Source: Fimbriosthenelais zetlandica
Lineage: Eukaryota
Direction: 5' to 3'
DNA length: 64,000 nucleotides
Assembly: GCA_977030845.1 (NCBI GenBank)
Contig: OZ365115.1
Location: 11,284,001-11,348,000, forward strand
Numbering within the stretch: position 1 is the stretch's first letter; each line of letters begins with the position of its first letter. The notes beneath the pieces were generated by a model that searched no databases, was not told the origin of the DNA, and was given only the letters and a program-made list of their open reading frames with translations. Shown here one piece after another: positions 15,501 to 64,000 of this stretch. A program made the translations under genes and the position numbers.

Positions 15501-18500
15501 CGTCATATTAAATTTATCTGTACAAATTAAATCAATCATATCCACCAAATTGTATGAAACTATAAACAGATGGTGTGCGAGGCTATACAAAGCTCTCAAT
15601 CAATGACAGTGGTAACCCATTTTTTGTATCTTTCCAATACTGTCTATTTGATACATGCATGCACTCACAGCCCCCATTGTATAAAAATGCATTTTCATAT
15701 TGAATCTGCCCATATCCCATGTCAGACGGACCAGATGTCACATCAGTATGTTTTAACAAACTTAATGTATGTATCCATTTATCATCTGACCACAATTATA
15801 ATATGAACCTCGCGCGCTGAATTGTTATAATTCTGGATATCTTAGTGAATTCCCTTGGGAAATATATACAATTATTCTTATTTTCAGAGCAGGAAACCTG
15901 CGGATTATAAGAGCGGTTACATTTCCTCTGCGGGTTGCTGCTGGGTGGGCCAGCATGATGAGGTGGGATTCCCGTGGATGTCCAGAGGCAGGCTGGTCAT
16001 TTTGTCAGCCGATCCCCTGGAGGAAGACTTTTAAATGAAGAGAGACACAGCTCCTGATTGCCTCTGATTTGACCCACACCTTGCCCATCAACCTCCCCGA
16101 CCCAATCAACAAACAAAGAACGGCATGCCCCCATCCCCAGGACACCCTCCAAACCATGCCCAGAAACAAACCCAACCTCTCTTCGTGTTTTTATTGATGG
16201 GTCTTCAATGGAGATAATTGTGAATTGTGTTTGATGTTCCTTCCTTTAACAGTTCCACCCCCTCACCCACCCACCCCATCCGACCCCATCCACTCCCATG
16301 TCCATGTCCGCCATGCAATCAGCTGGAAGCCCAGTAAGAACAAACCTACAGTCCCTTTCTCACCTCAGAAAAAACCACAAGGCCTTCTTAAATATTCGAG
16401 ATTATAACCCAATGCTAAGAAATGAAAAAAAATATCTAATAATTGAAAATGTTTATAACAAGGGTGTAGTCCCCACCAAGTGTCGGATAAAGAGAAAGTG
16501 AGTAGCCGAAAATAGAAGGGAATACAGGGAGAATGAAAAGAAACGAACAGGAAAAATAATGGTAGACAAGGAGGGTCTTGAGAAATGAAAAATAGACGCT
16601 AGACAGAAAGAGGAAAATGTAAAGCATGGAGAAAGCAGTTAACAAGGGTGGGAAGCAGACAAGCTTGAGTATAGGAATGGTTGGAGGTCCATCCCGCAGC
16701 AGAATGACCATGAAACATCTATCTAAATCACACAGGCACTTGGGTATTTATCCCCCTGACCCTGTACAGAGCGGCCACCCATTAGCTTGTGTCCCTGCAC
16801 CCAGGGCGGCCCGCCAGGGTCATGCTTTATCGCGGCCTGTCGTTTTTATTGAAGTAATCATTGGAGAGAGGAGCCGATTCAGAGCTCAATTTAGCCATAT
16901 TGGTTCCCGCTCCCATGACAAACGAAATGGCCTCTGTCAAACTGGATCCCATGAAGATGGGTGTGCAGATGACCCCACTTCCATATACTGAAGGTGGGGC
17001 TCAGGGTGGCACAACGAGGGGGGCACTTTCTCCACTGACCGGGCTTCGTTTGGTTCATTGCATTGGGGTTTAAAATCACAATATCACCCCAGAGGAAACA
17101 CGCTGTCGAAACACAATGACAAGCTCTTCTCGAAAAGCAGCAATGGTTCTTTTGGCTTGGACCATCGAAATATATCCCCTTCTGCGATTGTCTCGTACTA
17201 AAGGATTGTGCAATGCGACCGTCGTCGAAGAACCCTACGAGAGACACTTTCAGACCACGACCCAGTTAGCAGCACTCTGAAAATAACTGGCCTGTTGCAA
17301 CACAGTTAGCAGCACCGGGCAATCTGGAGTGACATTGTCAATAGAATTTTTGGTGAATGCTTCAATGTTCAGGGAATCCTGGACCTTTCGCATTCAAGTC
17401 GAACAATCTAAGTTCTAAGCTCAAGGAGACTTAAATAGAGGGTTGTACATTTATTTTTACATAGTAACCCCCCTGTTTATTTCCATCCAACACTACCCAA
17501 GTCCTTGATATGAGAAAATTGAGACAGGCTTGAGGATGAGTGAGGAAGAGAGGGAGGAGATGGCTGTGGGGGTGGTTGGGAGGAGTGGGGGGTATGGTCA
17601 CTCATCTGACGGAGGAGGAGGTGGAGGAACCATTTAGATGGCTTCACCATAGAGACGGTTATTCCTCACTGACATACTCACTCCCATTTCCGAATCCCGC
17701 CAACGTCGCCATGGATACGACGAGCTAAGCCTTGGTCTGATGAAGAAACTGCGCTAGAGGCCTCCACTGAGCTTTCTTGGAGGGACGGGCAGGGGGCTCC
17801 TCCAGGCGAGAGCTGAGACTTAGAGATTGAAAGCGGGATGAAATATTGGGTGAAATATCCGGCCTGTCATGGGTGGTGAAGAGGGGTTAGGAGTGATTGA
17901 ACAATGGTTGAAAGCAAATGACTTTTTCTGCCACCAGCCCTAAGTGCATTGTGATGTATGAATAGTCATGGATGCTGTGTTGAATGGTGATTTCATTCAT
18001 CGGGTGATCTGATGCCAAGCCTTAGCAATGAATCTTGGATGGCATTTGTGGGATTGGGATCGGGGGTGGGGTGGGGGTAGATACTGGTTCTGGGGGGCGT
18101 GAGGGTGGGGTTCTGGCTTATATTTGATTGGTTGGATTGAAGATTCTAAGATTCAGGACTCACTATCCTAATTAGATTTTTTTCTCTCAAATACTATTTT
18201 GTATCCATTAACTATTAGTTTTGCCAGGGGCACTTGGACCTATCTTAGTGCAAATATTCCCCCATATATTCTGTTAAATTTTGCGCTGAAACATGAAGGT
18301 CCGCAGCCCAAAAGGATATGATCTAGTCCACCTTTTGGACCCACCCACACTGCCTGAGGGCGGGCCAGGCTTTGGTCTGTAAGAGAGCCTATCAATAGAA
18401 TCAATAGAAAGTGATGGGTGTCCACCATGCATAGTGAATGAGCCATGTGACAAACAGAGATAAGCATGTAAATAGGCCATGCTGCCCTGTCCCACTCCTC

Positions 18501-20587
18501 GATATTACCCCCTCCTCACTGCCTCCTCCACTGCTCCTAACATGGCTAAATATGACGAGGTCTTTAAGGCTGGGGCTCCACTGATCTGAATGTACGACAG
18601 TTGGTTAAGCGATTGGCCGGCACTGGAAAATTACACCAAAATTCCTACCATTGCATACCCAACACATAACTCAAATGCAAAACTATATTAAGGAAATGGA
18701 CGAAAGTAAAATATGTTGGTTGTACATTTGTCATATAGTGTACAATTGCAGCAAAAAAGCAGGCCAGTACACACTCACCACACACCTCTAAATGCAGAAC
18801 TTACTAAAGACTTACTGAGAAATTAATTAACAGTGAAGCCAAATAAGGAGAGTTGGGTGATGAGGCGGCAGGAGAGTGATGAGATGAAGGTGATATAGCT
18901 GAAAGGTGACCCCAATCAACCCCCGCCTGGCCAGGTCATTCAGCCAGCCTGACATTTAGAGAGAGAAAACTAGACTGTGAAGCAATCTTATGATCCAATC
19001 TGACACCAGGGTTTTGTGGATTGATTAGAAGCAGGCCTGGGAGTGGATTGAGAAGACTTATATGAGGCATGATCCGGTTAGCAATTCACTCATTGTGATA
19101 CTATTATATAATGTTCTGTGAGTGGGTGGGTGAATCGTTATTTAACGTTGGTCCATGCAGTCAGCAATATCGCAGGACCAGGCGGAAACACGCCGTCAAC
19201 CGATCTTTATGACACCAATGGTTCTTCTACAGTCCTCTGATCATAGACAGAGGGAGATGTGACTCGTCTTGATACCCCAGTTAGCAGCACTGAGTGGGAA
19301 AGGACAATGGAATATGATTGGGGAATTGAACCTGGCACCTATACTCTGTGTATGCAACAACAATGTGGGCAGCTTGATTAGCTCATCAAGCTTATATCTG
19401 CATCTTACAAATTAGATGCAGATCTTATGACACCAATAGAAAAGTTCATTTTGATAAACAATCGGCAGGAAAGTAAGCAAAACCCCTAACATTTGGTGAA
19501 AATTAAGCCTTAGTTAATGGAAGATTGTATGCACTGCTAAATTGAACTCAAGCCATCATAGGTACTAAAGTTCTCAATACACAATGCAATATTTAAATCC
19601 AGGCCAGTTTTCTATTCTTAATGGAGTGATTTTAATCTAATCCTTGGCAAATATTTGATTTATAGATGCCATCGGAAATTTGGTATGCAATTAGATTTGT
19701 GAATTGTCAATTGCAAAGCCTGGGAATATTTTAATTGATTCTAATCAGGGTGACAATTACGCACATAATAGCGCCATTAAGGCCTCCTTTTCGCCCCTGA
19801 GGGAATTACATGGTGTCATTTACATTTCCAAATTGCTCTTAGTTGAATCCAAGAAAAGGTGACATTGAGATAAATGGCAGCTAGAATATTGGCGAAGAAA
19901 GCATTAACACATTTCACATGAAAATATGTCCGGATTTATGATAAATGAATTCATTAATTTTATCAGTGAATTTTGATATTTCATTTAGAGGGGAAAATAG
20001 TTATTGAAAGTGGCTTTTTCCTTTTACAGAGTCAGATTTGTACGTAGTTTGTGGCCTTTTTCTTAATTTAGACAAGGAGTTATGAATGGTGTTCATGACT
20101 GGAACTCTGCCCGACCTAAGTTGATTTATCAGCCAATACCCAACCTTATTTGCGCTTTCACTTTTCATTTTCCCCAGTTATCAATATATTTTTAAAATAG
20201 TACCCTAATTTGGTCCCTATATTTCCTAGCTTATAACCAAAGCCAGGAATATTGGAAACGTTGAGTATATATAGCTAAGGCCTTGGATACTGTGGTAGAT
20301 ACGAGAATAATGGAATATCTGCTGTATCCATGGAAACAAAATGATGATATCATTTTGGGAGTCAGTGGATAAGGGAAGGGAGAACAGATTGTATTAGTTA
20401 GCAGACGGAGACATGGAATAAGATACAGTGATGGAATAAATCACCTATCACAGTTACCCGTCCCATGCAGGTCTGTCAGACCTGAGCTAATTTATAATAA
20501 TTAGGAGGCACATGGATTGGATCATACCTTCTATCTATATGAACCGTAAAATGGAGAGAGACTTAACTCAGTTGCACCTGCACCTGG

Positions 20588-56125: not shown

Positions 56126-58191
56126 TCAGAATTTGTCTTGGTTAATGAACCGTCTTAGGAACCTCTTCACCTTTGACTTCTTTTTCTCACCTCCTGTAGG
56201 ACTGGAAGTGTTCACTGCCTCTAAACTTCCAGCAGATAAATCTTGCACGGTTCCTATATCCCCTCCCCCACCAACCTCATGTCCCGCAAGATCGTGAACA
56301 CTGCGCGAAATCTCCGGCCGAAACTCACTGAGGTTAGATGTAAAAGGATTCCTAGAATCACTCCCGGCTTGCATTGAATCATTAGACTCATCTGATGCGG
56401 CCTGGGGCTTTTTGTCGATCACTAAATCAGGTGTTGACTTGAAGTGCCTCAACCCTCGTTTGTTTATACTAGGCGTGAACCTTGGCTCATGTTTTGGCAT
56501 CAGATTGAGGTTTTTAGTTGAGACATAATGACCGTAATTGTTGGTTGTGTAATGGGTGGGTGAGACTTCTAACCTAGGTCCCATCTTGGTGGGTGTCATA
56601 ATGCGATCAACCATTTTAACATTGCGTCTTGTGTTATAAAGTGGGTGGGCTAACCCTCGTGGACCATCCTGTACATCCATCGGTTTCTTTTCGGGAGTTT
56701 TCCTGACAACCAGAGCTCCCGTGATTGGATCCCGCACTAATTTAACCTGAGGTGGCCTCTGTCGCTTGCCGATTTCCGTCCTTAAGTGATTCTCAAATCT
56801 CCCAGTAGGTGTCATCGCTATCGGCCTTCCATGATGTCTCGGTGGTTCTGGTGTTTCCTCTGGAAGATAATCCTCAGTTTGTTCCTCTAATAATAACGAT
56901 GAGTGTTCGTCGTATATCTCAGACAGTGTGTAGACCTCTGTCTCTTCCACGGGGTTCCTGGTTTGGTCGATTTTAGTGATTTCATCCAGCATTATTGGGG
57001 TTGATATATCAATGTCTTTTACGACAACTTCCGAATCGGGAACGGGGGTGGAGGTCCGTAAGGGAGGCTGGTAGTTGTTGACCAGATCTGTGAGGAGTTC
57101 GTGTACTCCTGGGTTGGTCACTCTGATATGGTCCATTTTATCTTTCACATAGTAACTCTCATTCTCATCCATTTGATGTGCTTTAGGTAAAACTATGCTC
57201 AGCTCCTGGTCTATGCTATTAACAGACTCACCGAGACCATTGTCTGAGTTCTTTATGACGTCTGCTTTGATATGTTGTACTTGGTCATACCTCGTCTGTT
57301 CCTCTGAATTTCTGTGTTCGATATTATGATTTCCATTTTGATAGGGAAGGACAATTTCTCTCGTTTCTTGGACTTCTTCATGGGTCCAAGTCTCTTCCCA
57401 CTGCTCCTCCTTTTCCTCCTCCCCATCTTCCACTCCTTCCTCTAGCCCTTCTTCCTTCTGTTCATTTTCTACTTTGTTTATGTACTTATCTTCCACCTCT
57501 TCTTGAACCTCTTCTAGTGATCTTTCCTCATCCACAACCACTTTTTGCTCCTCTTCTTCCAGCTCTTCTTCTGCCTCTTCCTCCAACACCTCTAATTCTC
57601 TTTGCACCTCTTCCTCAATCTCTTCCTCCATCTCTTCTTCCTTTTCATCCTCCTCTATGATATCCATCAGTTGTATATCTGTATTATTATTACCATCCCC
57701 CAGCACTTTACCATAACCATATCCATCTACCTCATCATAACTGTTTATCACATCATATTCCTCCACTTCATCCCGATCCCTTGTGGTTATAAACCCATCC
57801 AGTCCTTCAACAAATGTTATAATCGGTGCATCTAGTTCGGGAGTCGTGGTATCAAGGGCGGAAAAATGAAGAAAATCAACCCCAAAATCTTCAAAGTCTT
57901 CCTCCTTGAATATGCCCTCCTGCCATTGCAGTGCTTCTGTTGACGTGTCTTCAGCTGTTTCTGGGGTGGGTTCAGACTCTTCAACAGCTTGTTTCCTCGC
58001 GTAGATTTCACCATCAGATTCATCGAGGTTACTGAAACTCTCACCAAGGTCATCCTCACCAAGGTCATCGAGGAAGGACTGGGCAGCGTCGGCACGCAGC
58101 TCATGACGTAGAAGTTCACCATAAGGTGATCTGGGTAAGGAACAGAGGAAGAGGACGCCTCCTCTCAACTTCTTATCCAGCGTTACCTGAT
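56126..58191 (-). CDS. Terminal exon: end of the ANL C-terminal subdomain plus ~650-aa Glu/Asp-rich low-complexity extension
   Basis: ORF track 56126..58210. Acceptor ttgcag at 58192 joins the phase-1 end of exon 58361 ([14 protein letters not shown]). 688 codons are open to the stop. Confidence 0.88.
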
Positions 58192-61100
58192 CTGCAACCA
58201 TCAATTTCATTTCTCAGATTTATCACTTGATGGATCTTTGATTATTGTTCCAATTATGTCTCGCCTTGGAGTTTCTTAATACTATCTTAATTCTAAATCC
58301 TTAAATGTAACTTATTACTATAGTTTAATGAATGACGCATGCATCAAATGGTGTTCCTACCTGCCACATGATCGTAGATGTCCCCCTCTGTGATGGTAGC
58401 TTTAGGTTTCCTCACAACATAGGCTCTGGGTACATGGCCGAGGTTTCGGTATGGGACACCGACCACTGCAACATCCTCAACATCTGAGTGTTGCCGAATG
58501 ATTTTCTCCAGTTCCACTGGTGAGAGCTACAAAATGTGAGGTTTAGATCATTCTATGACTCACCAGGTTATGCATAATAAACAGGATTAATAAGACTCAT
58601 ATGTCTTAGTTTTAAGCAGGCATTGGTGCTTGGAATTACATGTACTAACTTTCTTATACTTACAAAGTTCTGATCGCTTTCAATGAGATCTTCCATCTTT
58701 CCAAAAGGAGTTACTAACTCTGATGTGTCTATACACCCAAGATTTCCTGAAGAAAACATAGGCAACAATGTCACAATTGGCGAAAACTAACAGGAAATCA
58801 GTCAGCAATGGGTACCTTACAATGTGCACTAGACTACCATGACCATGGCTGCCCAGTGGAAGAGCACAAGTACCAAAGGCATAATGCATGTTCCCCTGGC
58901 AAGGAACTTAAACATTAAAGATGTATAAGTTCTAAGCTATAATTGATTAAAGTATGTCGAGTACTCACCAGTGTGTAGCCAGCCCTCGTCGTCAATGCCT
59001 GTGTCTTCTGTGTCATCTTTTGTCAAGTAACCCAGCATAACTTGTGGTCCTTTCACACAGATCTCACCATAGGTGTCCGGTTCAACGACACCCCCGAAAA
59101 TGATGTCCATAAACTGGAAAAGATTCAGTCAAGTCTCTTATTCCATAATATTCAATTCACCACAATTTATTCCATATTTCCACGATGAAAATAGTATGAG
59201 AAGAATATTTGTAATCTTTTTTAAAGTCTACAAGTTAATGTCTTCCCCACTTTTTGCAGGGCTTAGCGATAGCCCAACGCACCCCAGCCCAAAAGCCACA
59301 GCGCACATCCAAAATTGAGATCTTGGATCTTCCCTAGTAGCATCAGTAAAAGTACCCACCTTGATTTGTGTGTTGGGGCAGACTTTGCCAGCATATCCCG
59401 GTAAAGTCTCGCCTTTAGTGACGACACACACAGCGCAGGCCTCGTCAATGGCGAAACCCTCTCTAAACTCAGTGACACCTGTCCTCACCATGATTTCACC
59501 TATCACGCCTTCCCTCACAGCTGTGCCGGTGTTGTAGATGCGGCACAGACAGCTCAGATCAGTGGTGTGAACTTCAGGAGCAGAGCTCAGGTACTCTGCC
59601 ATGTGGGTGTTAGTGTGAGCAATCGTCACCTACAAAAATATTTTAGAAAAAATAAAATGGAAGGGAACTTATGCCAATAATAACGTTTGTAACCTCAATA
59701 ATGGCATTAATAGTTTTCGGGATGTCAAAATTTAATGTTAAAAGGTGTTGCCTAACAACTTGTAGGCTACACCTTATATTTCAAAAATAATTCAGGACTA
59801 ATTCCGTTTGGATATCAAAACTGAATCTACAACCTATCCCTGTGGAATTTTGCTTTCCGTAGTTAGCCTTAGGCATAATTATACATGTGCATGATAATAA
59901 ATGTATAGCCTATAAAATAAATCTGCATAATATTAGTTGACATACCTTGTGCGTGGACATTGCCTGTAGGATATTGCTGTATGTAGGCTGGATGATCATA
60001 GTGGCGCCCTCTTTGATCGCAACTCCGCAATAAAATACAAGACCAATCATAGACCACATGGGATGACAACACATAGTGACGTCATTCAACATGACAGGTG
60101 ACAGGTTCCGACAGCTGAAACATACCATCAGTCTTTAAGTAATGGAATCATACGCTCACCTAAACAAGAATTAACTTCAACTTAATGTTGATGTTACTGA
60201 TGTTTGGTCTTACCCCGACTCAGTTTTTTCACTGATTTGGGAAGATCAGTGCAACCAATATTTTAGCCGATAAATAAGTAATACACTCAGAGAATAGAAA
60301 AACCTTTAAGGACAACCCTGAAAAGAAATGTCAATATTTTGAATGATTTGATGAGGGGTTTTAGTGTACTAACCTGAGGATCGCCACGTTAGAGTTGAAG
60401 CTGTGATGGGAATGCATGACGCCCTTGGGTTCACCTTTAATGTCATTGACAAACGTCACGATGCTGACGTCATCAGTGGTGTTTATTTTGGAGTCACTGG
60501 GCACAGAGCGTCCGTCATCTGTCAACATCTCTGCTATTGTCACATGACCACGTAAATGGTTCCCTAGTACAAAAATCTCCTGGAAAAAACAGATAAGCTT
60601 TTTTAAAATTTTATTTTCTACAACCCCAGTGTGATAACTGGGTTATCAAAGGTCAGTCATGCCCCCCACGGGCATGTAAAAAGCCATACATATCTGCCGC
60701 TGTCTATGTCTTTTGTTCATGTCATAATAATGTTAAAATCACGTACAAATGTATTATGATGGACATACCTTTACGCGCCCAATTCTGGAGGCTGCAAACT
60801 TGGCGTCATCCATTTTATCTCTGTCAGCAATGATGTAATCCGGGCAGAGCACTTGAAACTGATGGAAGAGGTCGTCTGAGGGATAAAAACAGTGAGTGAG
60901 AGCGAGAAAAAAAGAGCAAGAAAGAGCAGATTAGGTTGTTTAAACAAATCTTTATCAGAAAGCCTTTATCAGAAAGAATATAAGCCTACATCTTTATATT
61001 CTGATTCATTTGTTTTCAATGTATTTTAAAAGATTATACTAATGACTAGGCCTAATTATTTTTAACAAATTAAACAAATAATCGTCTTCAAACCTGTGTT

Positions 61101-61346
61101 AAGTTCAGGGTCAGCCATGGTGATCGTTCCTCCCAGCACCAGGACAGCGTGGACAATAAGGGGGATCTCAATACTGTTAGGCGAGTAGATACAGACCACG
61201 GGTCTCCGGGGGTAAGGGGTCCCCCTGGTATGACTGTCTCCATTGTCTTCACCCCTCACTCCTCTCTTATATAGGGCGCTCACCAGTCTCCTCACCCCCG
61301 ACACCAGGTTACTGTACAACAAACGCCGGCCAGTCGAGGTGTCTAT
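56126..61346 (-). CDS. 4-coumarate-CoA ligase / luciferase-like ANL-superfamily protein, probably catalytically dead, fused to a long acidic C-terminal tail (9 confident exons)
   Basis: Manually spliced exons, all GT-AG with compatible phases and no stops: 61346-61094, 60875-60769, 60579-60374, 60114-59946, 59629-59360, 59113-58969, 58746-58664, 58526-58361, 58191-56126 (TGA). The translation has ANL hallmarks: [86 protein letters not shown]. Confidence 0.9.
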
Positions 61347-61420
61347 CTGTAAAAATAAATCAACAAAAATGTATAATTATACGTGAGAGACAAGGCATAG
61401 CCTATAGAGTCCACACTCAC

Positions 61421-61440
61421 CAATACTACCACTGTACTGA
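61421..61440 (-). CDS. Probable 20-nt microexon of the ANL-like gene (I-STVVVL)
   Basis: Minus strand: gtttgttttgggtttgtag|tcagtacagtggtagtattg|gtgagt. Phase 1 to 0, which links the upstream ATG exon exactly to exon 61346. Confidence 0.5.
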
Positions 61441-62381
61441 CTACAAACCCAAAACAAACCTATTATAATATAATAGGCGGGCAACCGGGGTTCCCCTTGT
61501 CTCCAAATGAGGTTTTCTGTCCTGTGATTGGACGCTGTATGGTGCTATATGTGTGTGCCAAGGAGGTGTCCCCCTTATAGGCCATCCAGAATTGGTATTG
61601 GATCACAACGACCAAGGCCCATTGATATTATGGACTATTGCTTTGTGTGCTCATGTATTTTCGATCCACCATTGGCTACAGTGGTTTCATCCTTAATTGG
61701 ACTCATCAGGTATAATTATTTCGTTTCCCCGACAGGGGGACGAAATACTGTTCTTGTGTGTCCGTTATAATTGTTGTAGTGAAGTTTTTCTGAAAATCGA
61801 CTTTCTAATAGAGGTAGGAATCTGGTTTCTAGTCACCAGGTAGGGCATGTTAAGAAGTGTTCATAATGTGTGAAATTGACATCATGTGACATCGGGTGAC
61901 ATCACAATGGTGTCATGAATTTTAAAAATGGCAAAATGTAATGGCAGTTTTTTTCAGGTATCTGCCAACCAAAAATCATGGCACTGGTACTAAGTTACAT
62001 GTCTATGATGCTCTATCATTTGATCCCATCATTTGACCTGTGCCCTAATTATTTTTCGTTAATTAGCTAATTAGCATGAAATCATATCAAGCCTGCCTCC
62101 TCCTTAACCGCTCCATAAAGGTGAATCATTAGGCGGCTATCCATTGATTAGAGGCTTCTTGTTAGCATGAAATACTCAATTTTGTAATTGACTATTTTGT
62201 TCCCCACGATAATGACATTTCAAAATGAGGTCATGACATATTTTTGAAAAAAATGATTCAATCTTGAAAAATCATGTACACACGTGCAGAATGGTCAGAT
62301 CTACCTAAATCGAAAATTTGGTGGCAATCCATCAATTATTAAGGGAGTTAGCTAATTTTAAAAAGAATGGGTAAAAGCTAA

Positions 62382-62465
62382 GCCAGAGGCAGGATTTGAA
62401 CCCATGCTGAAGAAAGTACCATTGGACTGACAGACCAGCAATCTACCTAACTGAGCTATCTTGGC
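62382..62465 (-). pseudogene. tRNA-like element (pseudo-tRNA or tRNA-derived SINE head)
   Basis: GCCAAGATAGCTCAGTTAGGTAGA...GGTTCAAATCCTGCCTCTGGC: A box, B box and a partial acceptor stem, but a mispaired anticodon arm. Confidence 0.6.
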
Positions 62466-62589
62466 TAATGCGTATAGACATGGTTTTTAACTGGGTGACA
62501 CTTGATCTGTGGTGGATGGGAGCTATTTAGCACATGAATAACTCATGAAATAAACAGCCCACTATCTAATTAGCATATTCTAGGGTAAG

Positions 62590-63290
62590 GGTAAATTATT
62601 AAAGGCTACCCTATTATAGGCCAGTGTCTTATAGGCTGACCTATTGTAGGATTGCTGGCATGTCAAACCAAAGGTATTTCTACAGTGTGGGTTCAAATCC
62701 TAGCCTATTATAAGATATTCATTTATAGGCTGGCCTATTGAGGCTAGCAATTACTAGGTCAGCCTATTGTTGTATGCTAGCCTATTTATAGTGCCAGGGT
62801 CAATAGCTAAGCCTATTTTAGGTTAAGAGATAATAGGCAAGCCTATCATAGGCTACCCTTTTATAGGCCAGCCTATTGTTATATGCCAGGGTCAATAGCT
62901 TAGCCTATTTTAGGGTAGGAGAGAATAGGTTGGCTTATTGTAGGCTAGTCTGTTAGAGGCTGGCCTATTGATATATGCTAGCCTATTTATAGTCTCAGCA
63001 TAAATAGCTTAGCCTATTTTAGGGTAAGGGTTAACAGCCTAATATAGGCTGGCTTTTTATAGGCTAGCCTATGGTCATGTGCCCTTGCCTATATTCCAGC
63101 CTATGCATAGTGCCAGGGTCAACAGGCTGAGCTGAGCATCTGAATGATGCATGAGCCTAGTACAGGCTGGCTTTTCATAGGCTAGCTTATGGTCATGTAT
63201 CCTAGCCTATATTCTAGCCTAGATATTGCTTTACCCTAGCCTATATGCTTAGTGCCAGGGTCAATAGACTAAAATATTTAATGGCTTTTG
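62590..63290. repeat. Degenerate satellite of ATAGGCTAGCCTAT-type quasi-palindromes
   Basis: Repeated TAGGCT/AGCCTA motifs. GCCAGGGTCAAYAG recurs at about 62793, 62885, 63113, 63255; an outlier lies near 63685-63720. Confidence 0.8.
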
Positions 63291-63318
63291 GTAGACCTGT
63301 GAGACACAGAGAACTCAC

Positions 63319-63371
63319 TACAGCTTTTCACCATGGTGTTTGAGAGGACCAGCGTCTTTACTAAGTCACCT
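63319..63371 (-). CDS. Probable start-codon exon of the ANL-like gene (ATG at 63334, MVKSC)
   Basis: ctgtttgctttgtag|...aacaccATGGTGAAAAGCTGTA|gtgagt. Strong ACC-ATG-G context and a phase-1 end compatible with the 20-nt exon. The frame is also open upstream of the ATG, so a further 5' coding exon is possible. Confidence 0.45.
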
Positions 63372-64000
63372 CTACAAAGCAAACAGCGAAAGAAATTGAT
63401 TTAATGGTGAATATACAATCAACATATTAAATAATATTTTATTCATACATCGAGAAGACATATAGCAGGAAATTGAAAGCACATTAATAAAAGAGTTCTT
63501 GTGTTCCCAATCTATATTATATGAGGCACCCTCCTTTGTCACTTTAGGTTACTATTAGATCGAGATAGTGGTGTAGAAATCATCCACCAGGTGCAGAAGC
63601 GGAAATCCCAACCAACTTCTTGAATGCTGAAGATCACTAACTACTCTCATCAGAAAGTATCAATAGAAAGTGTCAATAGCTTCTATAGGCAAGCCTATTG
63701 TTATATACTAGCCTATTTGTAGATTCACACATATCAGGCATGACTATCCCATGTTCCTCTAGTTTCCCTGCCCCCTTATCATGAACACAAGGGAAACGAA
63801 ATATCACTTATTGCTAGTTTGGTAGGTGTACTCGAGACCAGGGATTATATTCTTGGCCTCTCAGTGGTCCCCCATATATGTAATCGATTTGTATATATAT
63901 ATGGGTAGCACCTGGTTATAAATCTACATATACAGCTAGATTGTTTCTAGTAGTAGTATATTGATATTAGAAGTATAGAGTGGTTCGATAACTTGTAACC

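Follow-up and report, generated by a model that had tools for sequence, protein, structure and literature searches.

Catalytically dead members have been well studied among kinases, phosphatases and proteases. In our full-text literature searches, which paired pseudoenzyme with ANL superfamily, adenylation domain or acyl-CoA (coenzyme A) synthetase, no described pseudoenzyme was found for the large ANL superfamily, which comprises acyl-CoA synthetases, NRPS adenylation domains and luciferases. The closest precedents are ANL-fold proteins put to non-canonical use. The crystal proteins wsluc1-3 of the squid Watasenia scintillans contain ANL motifs and catalyse an ATP-dependent light reaction (PMC4899746), and DIP2 (DISCO-interacting protein 2), conserved across eukaryotes, combines a DMAP1-binding domain with two tandem domains like those of fatty acyl-AMP ligases (FAAL) and has a non-metabolic, regulatory role (PMC9342972). 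Here we describe a minus-strand gene in a 64,000-nucleotide stretch of the Fimbriosthenelais zetlandica genome (assembly GCA_977030845.1, contig OZ365115.1, positions 11,284,001 to 11,348,000), referred to as the window, in whose coordinates positions are given. We consider it likely that this gene is intact and under selection and that its product is a non-catalytic ANL-fold protein belonging to the luciferase/4CL-like branch (4CL, 4-coumarate:CoA ligase).

Five residues, namely A5 Glu, A6 Gly, A7 Asp, A8 Arg and A10 Lys, are invariant in 374 class I adenylating enzymes, and mutation of Gly or Pro in the P-loop (A3) strongly inhibits activity (PMC6122825). The register of substitutions was set by ungapped alignments to solved structures, and in the window protein the five positions read Glu, Gly, Asn, Lys and Glu, three of the five being replaced. 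The P-loop (60453-60421) aligns to a solved structure without gaps (YTSGSTGDPKGVM) and reads VNDIKG, with Asp at a Gly that is 97% conserved (position according to PMC6122825). The A3 consensus [ST][ST]G[ST][ST]GxPKG is matched neither here nor in a homologous gene from another species (species C, described below), which has DTDSRGNPRA. At A5, REGFAIDE of the window protein aligns with RQGYGLTE of a solved structure; FAIDE (59455-59441) thus keeps the Glu of YGxTE and lacks its Tyr, Gly and Thr, and the LGTAG of species C lacks the Glu. The A6 block (GEIxxxG) with its invariant Gly is present in both proteins (YGEICVKGP in the window, FGEICVRGP in species C), and the window protein also has VAVVGVP. 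Exon F ends in EGWLHT exactly where the luciferase GWLHTGD goes on with GD, and exon G then supplies G-N, placing Asn (AAT, 58744-58742) at the invariant ribose-binding Asp of A7, which is His in species C. At A8 the motif GRxxDxIKxxGxxV is broken in that Arg is replaced by Lys (AAG, 58699-58697) and the later Lys and Gly are gone, and the hairpin is degenerate, with IESDQNF (ISYDSFS in species C) in place of IKYKGYQ. Finally, the invariant catalytic Lys of A10 is Glu in the window protein (GAA, 58117-58115), in species C and in a third species, species B. The positions that an earlier note on this DNA had assigned to these motifs and codons were exact. Its claim that every adenylation motif is disabled holds for the P-loop, A7, A8 and A10 and goes too far for the A5 Glu, the A6 block, the A4 His and the G-x-PKG of the P-loop, all of which are retained. 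By this register, residues essential for adenylation are gone from the window protein, and acyl-adenylate formation by it is almost certainly impossible.

A word-indexed search with the open reading frame (ORF) of the last exon, either whole or as its conserved tail, gave a single match, P0001, a partial ORF of 490 residues that comes from species B and lies on Logan contigs L001/L002. With exon E, an exhaustive search of 1.84 billion representatives and a word-indexed search yielded P0002, a 107-residue ORF fragment from species C. Three other exon E matches (P0003-P0005) were dismissed because they align in 3-10 repeated stretches, P0003 and P0004 being visibly repetitive. P0002 lies on a 1.46-Mb contig of species C, of which 20 kb (L003) was used to rebuild the gene. 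The comparison therefore covers three species: the window species, species B, represented by its last exon only, and species C, represented by nine exons.

The rebuilt gene of species C has nine exons with phases identical to those of the window gene, all bounded by AG and GT and without a stop. The two proteins are 52% identical over 513 residues, and the proportion of differences is 0.78 at synonymous sites (pS, saturated) and 0.32 at nonsynonymous sites (pN). For the last exon of the window gene and species B, pS is 0.79 and pN is 0.26. Intact structure, saturated pS and low pN amount to strong purifying selection across a deep divergence and show that the gene is not a decaying pseudogene, and the purifying selection that the earlier note had proposed to look for is therefore borne out. 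The motifs of species C read DTDSRGNPRA at A3, LGTAG at A5, TGH at A7, GRIDDLISYDSFS at A8 (Arg retained, the rest gone) and GE at A10, so that three of its five invariant residues are replaced (A5 Gly, A7 His, A10 Glu), and its P-loop Gly is Asp as in the window protein. In species B, the A10 segment PKSSYGEVLR likewise has Glu at the catalytic Lys. Orthologues with canonical motifs, which the earlier note had named as evidence against its reading, were thus not found in species C or, at A10, in species B. Most replacements differ between homologues, those at A3, A5, A7 and A8 among them. Just two are shared, namely A10 Glu in all three species and, in two species, a basic amino acid in the fifth place of the P-loop. 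Since the motifs are broken in three species, mostly by different residues, the loss is ancestral and the sites have drifted since.

The distribution of conservation points the same way. Between the window protein and species C, 19 of 50 motif positions are identical, as against 250 of 463 in the remaining domain. Exon G, which carries A7 and A8, is the least conserved exon (29%), and exon B is among the best conserved (64%). The region of exon G is normally the best-conserved part of ANL enzymes and that of exon B is normally variable. This pattern is the reverse of that of an active enzyme and would be expected if selection acts on the fold and its surfaces rather than on the active site. 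The essential catalytic residues are gone and the gene is under purifying selection, and because selection acts on the gene but not on the motifs, the earlier proposal of a pseudoenzyme, in which the fold and not the ATP chemistry is maintained, gains support from the motif states of species C and B together with pS and pN.

Two features of the species C locus were noted in passing. A tandem copy of the 3' end of its exon F, including the GT donor (…EGWLLTG|GTAATTC), follows some 90 nt further downstream (L003 10640-10760) and may be an alternative donor or a dead copy. Upstream of the gene (L004 15539-16391 on the plus strand and 17519-19090 on the minus strand) lie two ORFs with Pfam DDE_Tnp_4, of Harbinger-type transposase, and next to them a lysine-rich 523-residue ORF that shares the strand of the ANL gene, is unrelated and has no Pfam match; neither the DDE_Tnp_4 ORFs nor the 523-residue ORF has a counterpart in the window.

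The assignment to the luciferase/4CL-like branch, already proposed in the earlier note, rests on colinear profile matches and on the nearest solved structures. Translations of the exons match Pfam AMP-binding (PF00501) in order at profile positions 18-80, 159-192, 204-241, 262-354 and 361-384; each of the five pieces scores below the gathering threshold singly, and their sum is about 87 bits. Exon H matches AMP-binding_C (PF13193) with an E-value of 2.6e-10 and 41.5 bits, above the cutoff of 24.5. The protein thus has an N-terminal AMP-binding domain followed colinearly by AMP-binding_C, the arrangement of the ANL fold. Among solved structures, beetle luciferases and plant 4CL come closest to exons E, F and H, and a protein-language-model search with exon E also returned AMP-binding fragments.

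In the gene model, which was read from the genomic sequence, nine exons on the minus strand each have an AG acceptor and a GT donor, and when spliced they form one continuous reading frame, 1,154 codons long, which closes with TGA at 56126-56128. In an earlier exon concatenate, the remaining two frames had 29-94 stops each. The phases of exons A to I are 0, 1, 0, 2, 0, 0, 1, 0 and 1; as the earlier note had stated, the introns are canonical and phase-compatible and the spliced frame holds no stop. Exon A (61094-61346), the first recognised exon, begins in phase 0, covers the A1/A2 region of the ANL N-terminal subdomain (profile positions 18-80) and is 45% identical to exon A of species C. It is followed by exon B (60769-60875, phase 1) and by exon C (60374-60579), which carries the degenerate P-loop and whose counterpart in species C reads FDTDSRGNPRA. 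Exon D (59946-60114, phase 2) contains the A4 region CCHPMW with the His retained, and exon E (59360-59629) contains the A5 remnant FAIDE in place of YGxTE within a strongly conserved flank. The intact A6 block and EGWLHTG are encoded by exon F (58969-59113), whose top match in the PDB is Luciola luciferase (2e-07). Exon G (58664-58746) bears the A7 Asp to Asn and A8 hinge Arg to Lys changes, and exon H (58361-58526) encodes the core of the C-terminal subdomain (SPVELE... VAVVGVP...), matching luciferases and 4CL in the PDB at 7e-08 to 3e-06. Exon I spans 58191-56126; its start (58055-58191) completes the ANL fold with A10, its middle (57116-58054) is an acidic low-complexity tail, and its end (56126-57115) encodes the conserved C-terminal part of the tail.

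Both ends of the gene differ from those first proposed. The note had ended it at 58085; the last exon in fact reads on over some 640 further codons, as far as the TGA. It had started it at 61346, which is an internal acceptor in phase 0, and therefore at least one 5' exon is absent from the model. No 5' exon was found in window 61347-64000 when this region was compared by tblastx with 5.6 kb and then 15 kb upstream of the species C gene, nothing conserved being detected. No tandem paralogue or alternative exon with canonical motifs is present within the window.

Several other elements were seen in the neighbourhood. A 92-bp tandem repeat (2.2 copies, 81% matches) occupies 62779-62978, a stretch that might hold a 5' exon or the promoter of the gene. 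About 350 nt upstream of exon A, at about 61705-61780 on the minus strand, a long hairpin (TTTCGTCCCC...GGGGAAACGAAA) is followed by a core that resembles a hammerhead ribozyme (CTGATGAG ... GAAAC). A search of 61400-62100 gave no Rfam match to this motif at E-values up to 1, and it could be a retroelement-associated minimal hammerhead or a chance occurrence. The sole Rfam family above its gathering score in the window is a tRNA gene at 34677-34748 on the minus strand (RF00005, 67.6 bits).

The ANL domain continues within the same exon into a tail of about 640 residues. In each of the three species, a single unbroken ORF runs through the A10 segment and the first conserved block of the tail, DGF[IV]TTR. 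The first part of the tail in the window protein comprises about 315 residues with a net charge near -82, and its length varies between the window species and species B. The second part comprises 329 residues and is 57% identical to species B (E-value 1e-100). In species C, one or more introns interrupt the tail, and its sequence has diverged much further. AlphaFold2 modelled the conserved 329 residues with a mean pLDDT of 46 and a pTM of 0.15, the sole confident element being a short beta-hairpin at KLVRDPxTGALVV; the conserved part is therefore predicted to be a disordered region carrying linear motifs. No Pfam family matched the tail at E-values up to 1, and all its ESM Atlas matches were below threshold. 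Two short segments of the tail were noted by eye. RHFKSTP, in the region of 56400-56420 (RHVKSTP in species B), fits the 14-3-3 mode II pattern RX[FY]XpSXP and is a putative match. At the extreme C-terminus (about 56132-56170) is a conserved basic-hydrophobic stretch, presumably of the type that binds calmodulin or membranes. Many luciferase/4CL-like peroxisomal acyl-CoA synthetases end in a C-terminal type 1 peroxisomal targeting signal. The window protein ends in ...INQDKF after its 640-residue tail, without a peroxisomal signal of the SKL type.

We then weighed other explanations of the locus. One is a pseudogene, inactivated not long ago, in which the open frame is a matter of chance. It would account for the broken catalytic motifs, but it is extremely improbable and was rejected: 1,154 codons are open over nine exons whose splice sites are canonical, species C has an intact gene of the same structure at saturated synonymous sites (pS 0.78-0.79 and pN 0.26-0.32 over both comparisons), and the tail is conserved in species B. 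The protein might instead still be an enzyme, either a very divergent ANL member with non-canonical adenylation or one that carries out a partial reaction, such as binding preformed acyl-adenylate or acyl-CoA and then performing thioester or oxidative chemistry. Elements of the fold and pocket are indeed retained (the His of A4, the Arg that precedes A5, the A6 block and G-x-PKG), as is the A5 Glu, a Mg-site residue, and purifying selection is strong across the whole domain. The replaced residues at A3, A5, A7 and A8 differ between homologues, however, which argues against selection for a common catalytic geometry. In all three species the oppositely charged Glu stands in place of the A10 Lys, a residue without exception among 374 enzymes (PMC6122825), and the A8 hairpin that serves the thioester-forming conformation is degenerate as well. 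On this evidence, residual catalysis of either kind is unlikely.

A different concern is that the gene model itself misleads, in that the ANL part and the tail belong to different products, owing to an unseen donor in the last exon, or that the real transcript uses other exons. The split and much more diverged tail of species C would agree with this, as would the 5' end of the gene, which was not located. The common ORF of the A10 segment and DGF[IV]TTR in all three species and the absence of alternative ANL exons from the window speak against it, and we regard it as quite improbable. What weighs against a non-catalytic ANL protein more generally is that the splice model is a prediction from genomic sequence, that only three species were found, one of them known just from its last exon, and that the model covers the gene from exon A onwards, its N-terminal exon or exons being absent. 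Some motif elements also survive, namely A5 Glu, the A6 block, A4 His and the G-x-PKG of the P-loop in the window protein and A8 Arg in species C; given these elements, the protein may have kept some residual nucleotide or acyl binding. A role as scaffold or ligand-binding protein is one that we infer, and any specific role is far less probable than the loss of catalysis itself.

For a non-catalytic ANL protein, the following mechanism can be proposed. An ancestor common to at least three species already lacked the P-loop residues that bind the phosphates of ATP, the ribose-binding A7 Asp and A8 Arg, and the A10 Lys that drives adenylation, and these sites have drifted afterwards. The two-subdomain ANL fold is retained and would serve to bind either a partner protein or a small ligand, for example a fatty acid or a derivative of CoA. 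The tail, with its variable acidic stretch, conserved disordered region of 330 residues with short linear motifs and basic amphipathic end, may recruit or tether partners, and the entire protein would then act as an adaptor or scaffold rather than as an enzyme. As a speculation, A10 Glu and the basic fifth residue of the P-loop might form a new salt bridge between the subdomains. A wider proposal is that this is the first described family of animal ANL-fold pseudoenzymes, restricted to one lineage (apparently annelids), in which the fold serves as a ligand- or partner-binding module, a salt bridge between A10 Glu and the P-loop position changed from Thr to Lys or Arg fixes the subdomains without nucleotide, and the tail delivers the module to partners or membranes. 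Taken as a whole, this proposal is tentative and we hold it to be possible rather than probable.

If the non-catalytic reading is correct, the gene would be a clean natural example of an ANL pseudoenzyme, with three of five invariant residues gone, the fold under selection and a conserved disordered tail fused to it. It could reveal uses of the ANL fold beyond adenylation, for instance as a ligand sensor, a scaffold or a conformational switch. It is also a warning for annotation, as a Pfam AMP-binding match here would be misnamed a ligase. Its narrow distribution restricts its general importance.

The window protein shares with firefly and other beetle luciferases, the luciferase-like fatty acyl-CoA synthetase CG6178 of insects and plant 4CL the same two-subdomain fold, as judged from colinear profile matches, and retains the A6 block, EGWLHTG, PxELE and KKLRGGVxF elements of the luciferase/4CL type. 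Unlike these enzymes, it lacks the P-loop Ser, Thr and Gly, has Asn, Lys and Glu at A7, A8 and A10, and ends in an acidic disordered tail of about 640 residues instead of an SKL-type signal, and its family is confined to very few species in public protein space. The squid proteins wsluc1-3 are likewise lophotrochozoan members of the ANL superfamily in a role beyond ordinary acyl-CoA synthesis (PMC4899746); compared by description, they contain the motifs that the window protein lacks, and the window protein has the long tail. DIP2 resembles the window protein in that ANL-fold domains are placed within a larger eukaryotic protein. Compared by description (PMC9342972), the two differ in that the window gene has one luciferase/4CL-like domain with a disordered tail and is lineage-restricted. 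In its mode of evolution, the window gene is like the pseudokinases, pseudophosphatases and iRhoms, in which the fold likewise remains under purifying selection after the loss of catalysis and the catalytic positions drift.

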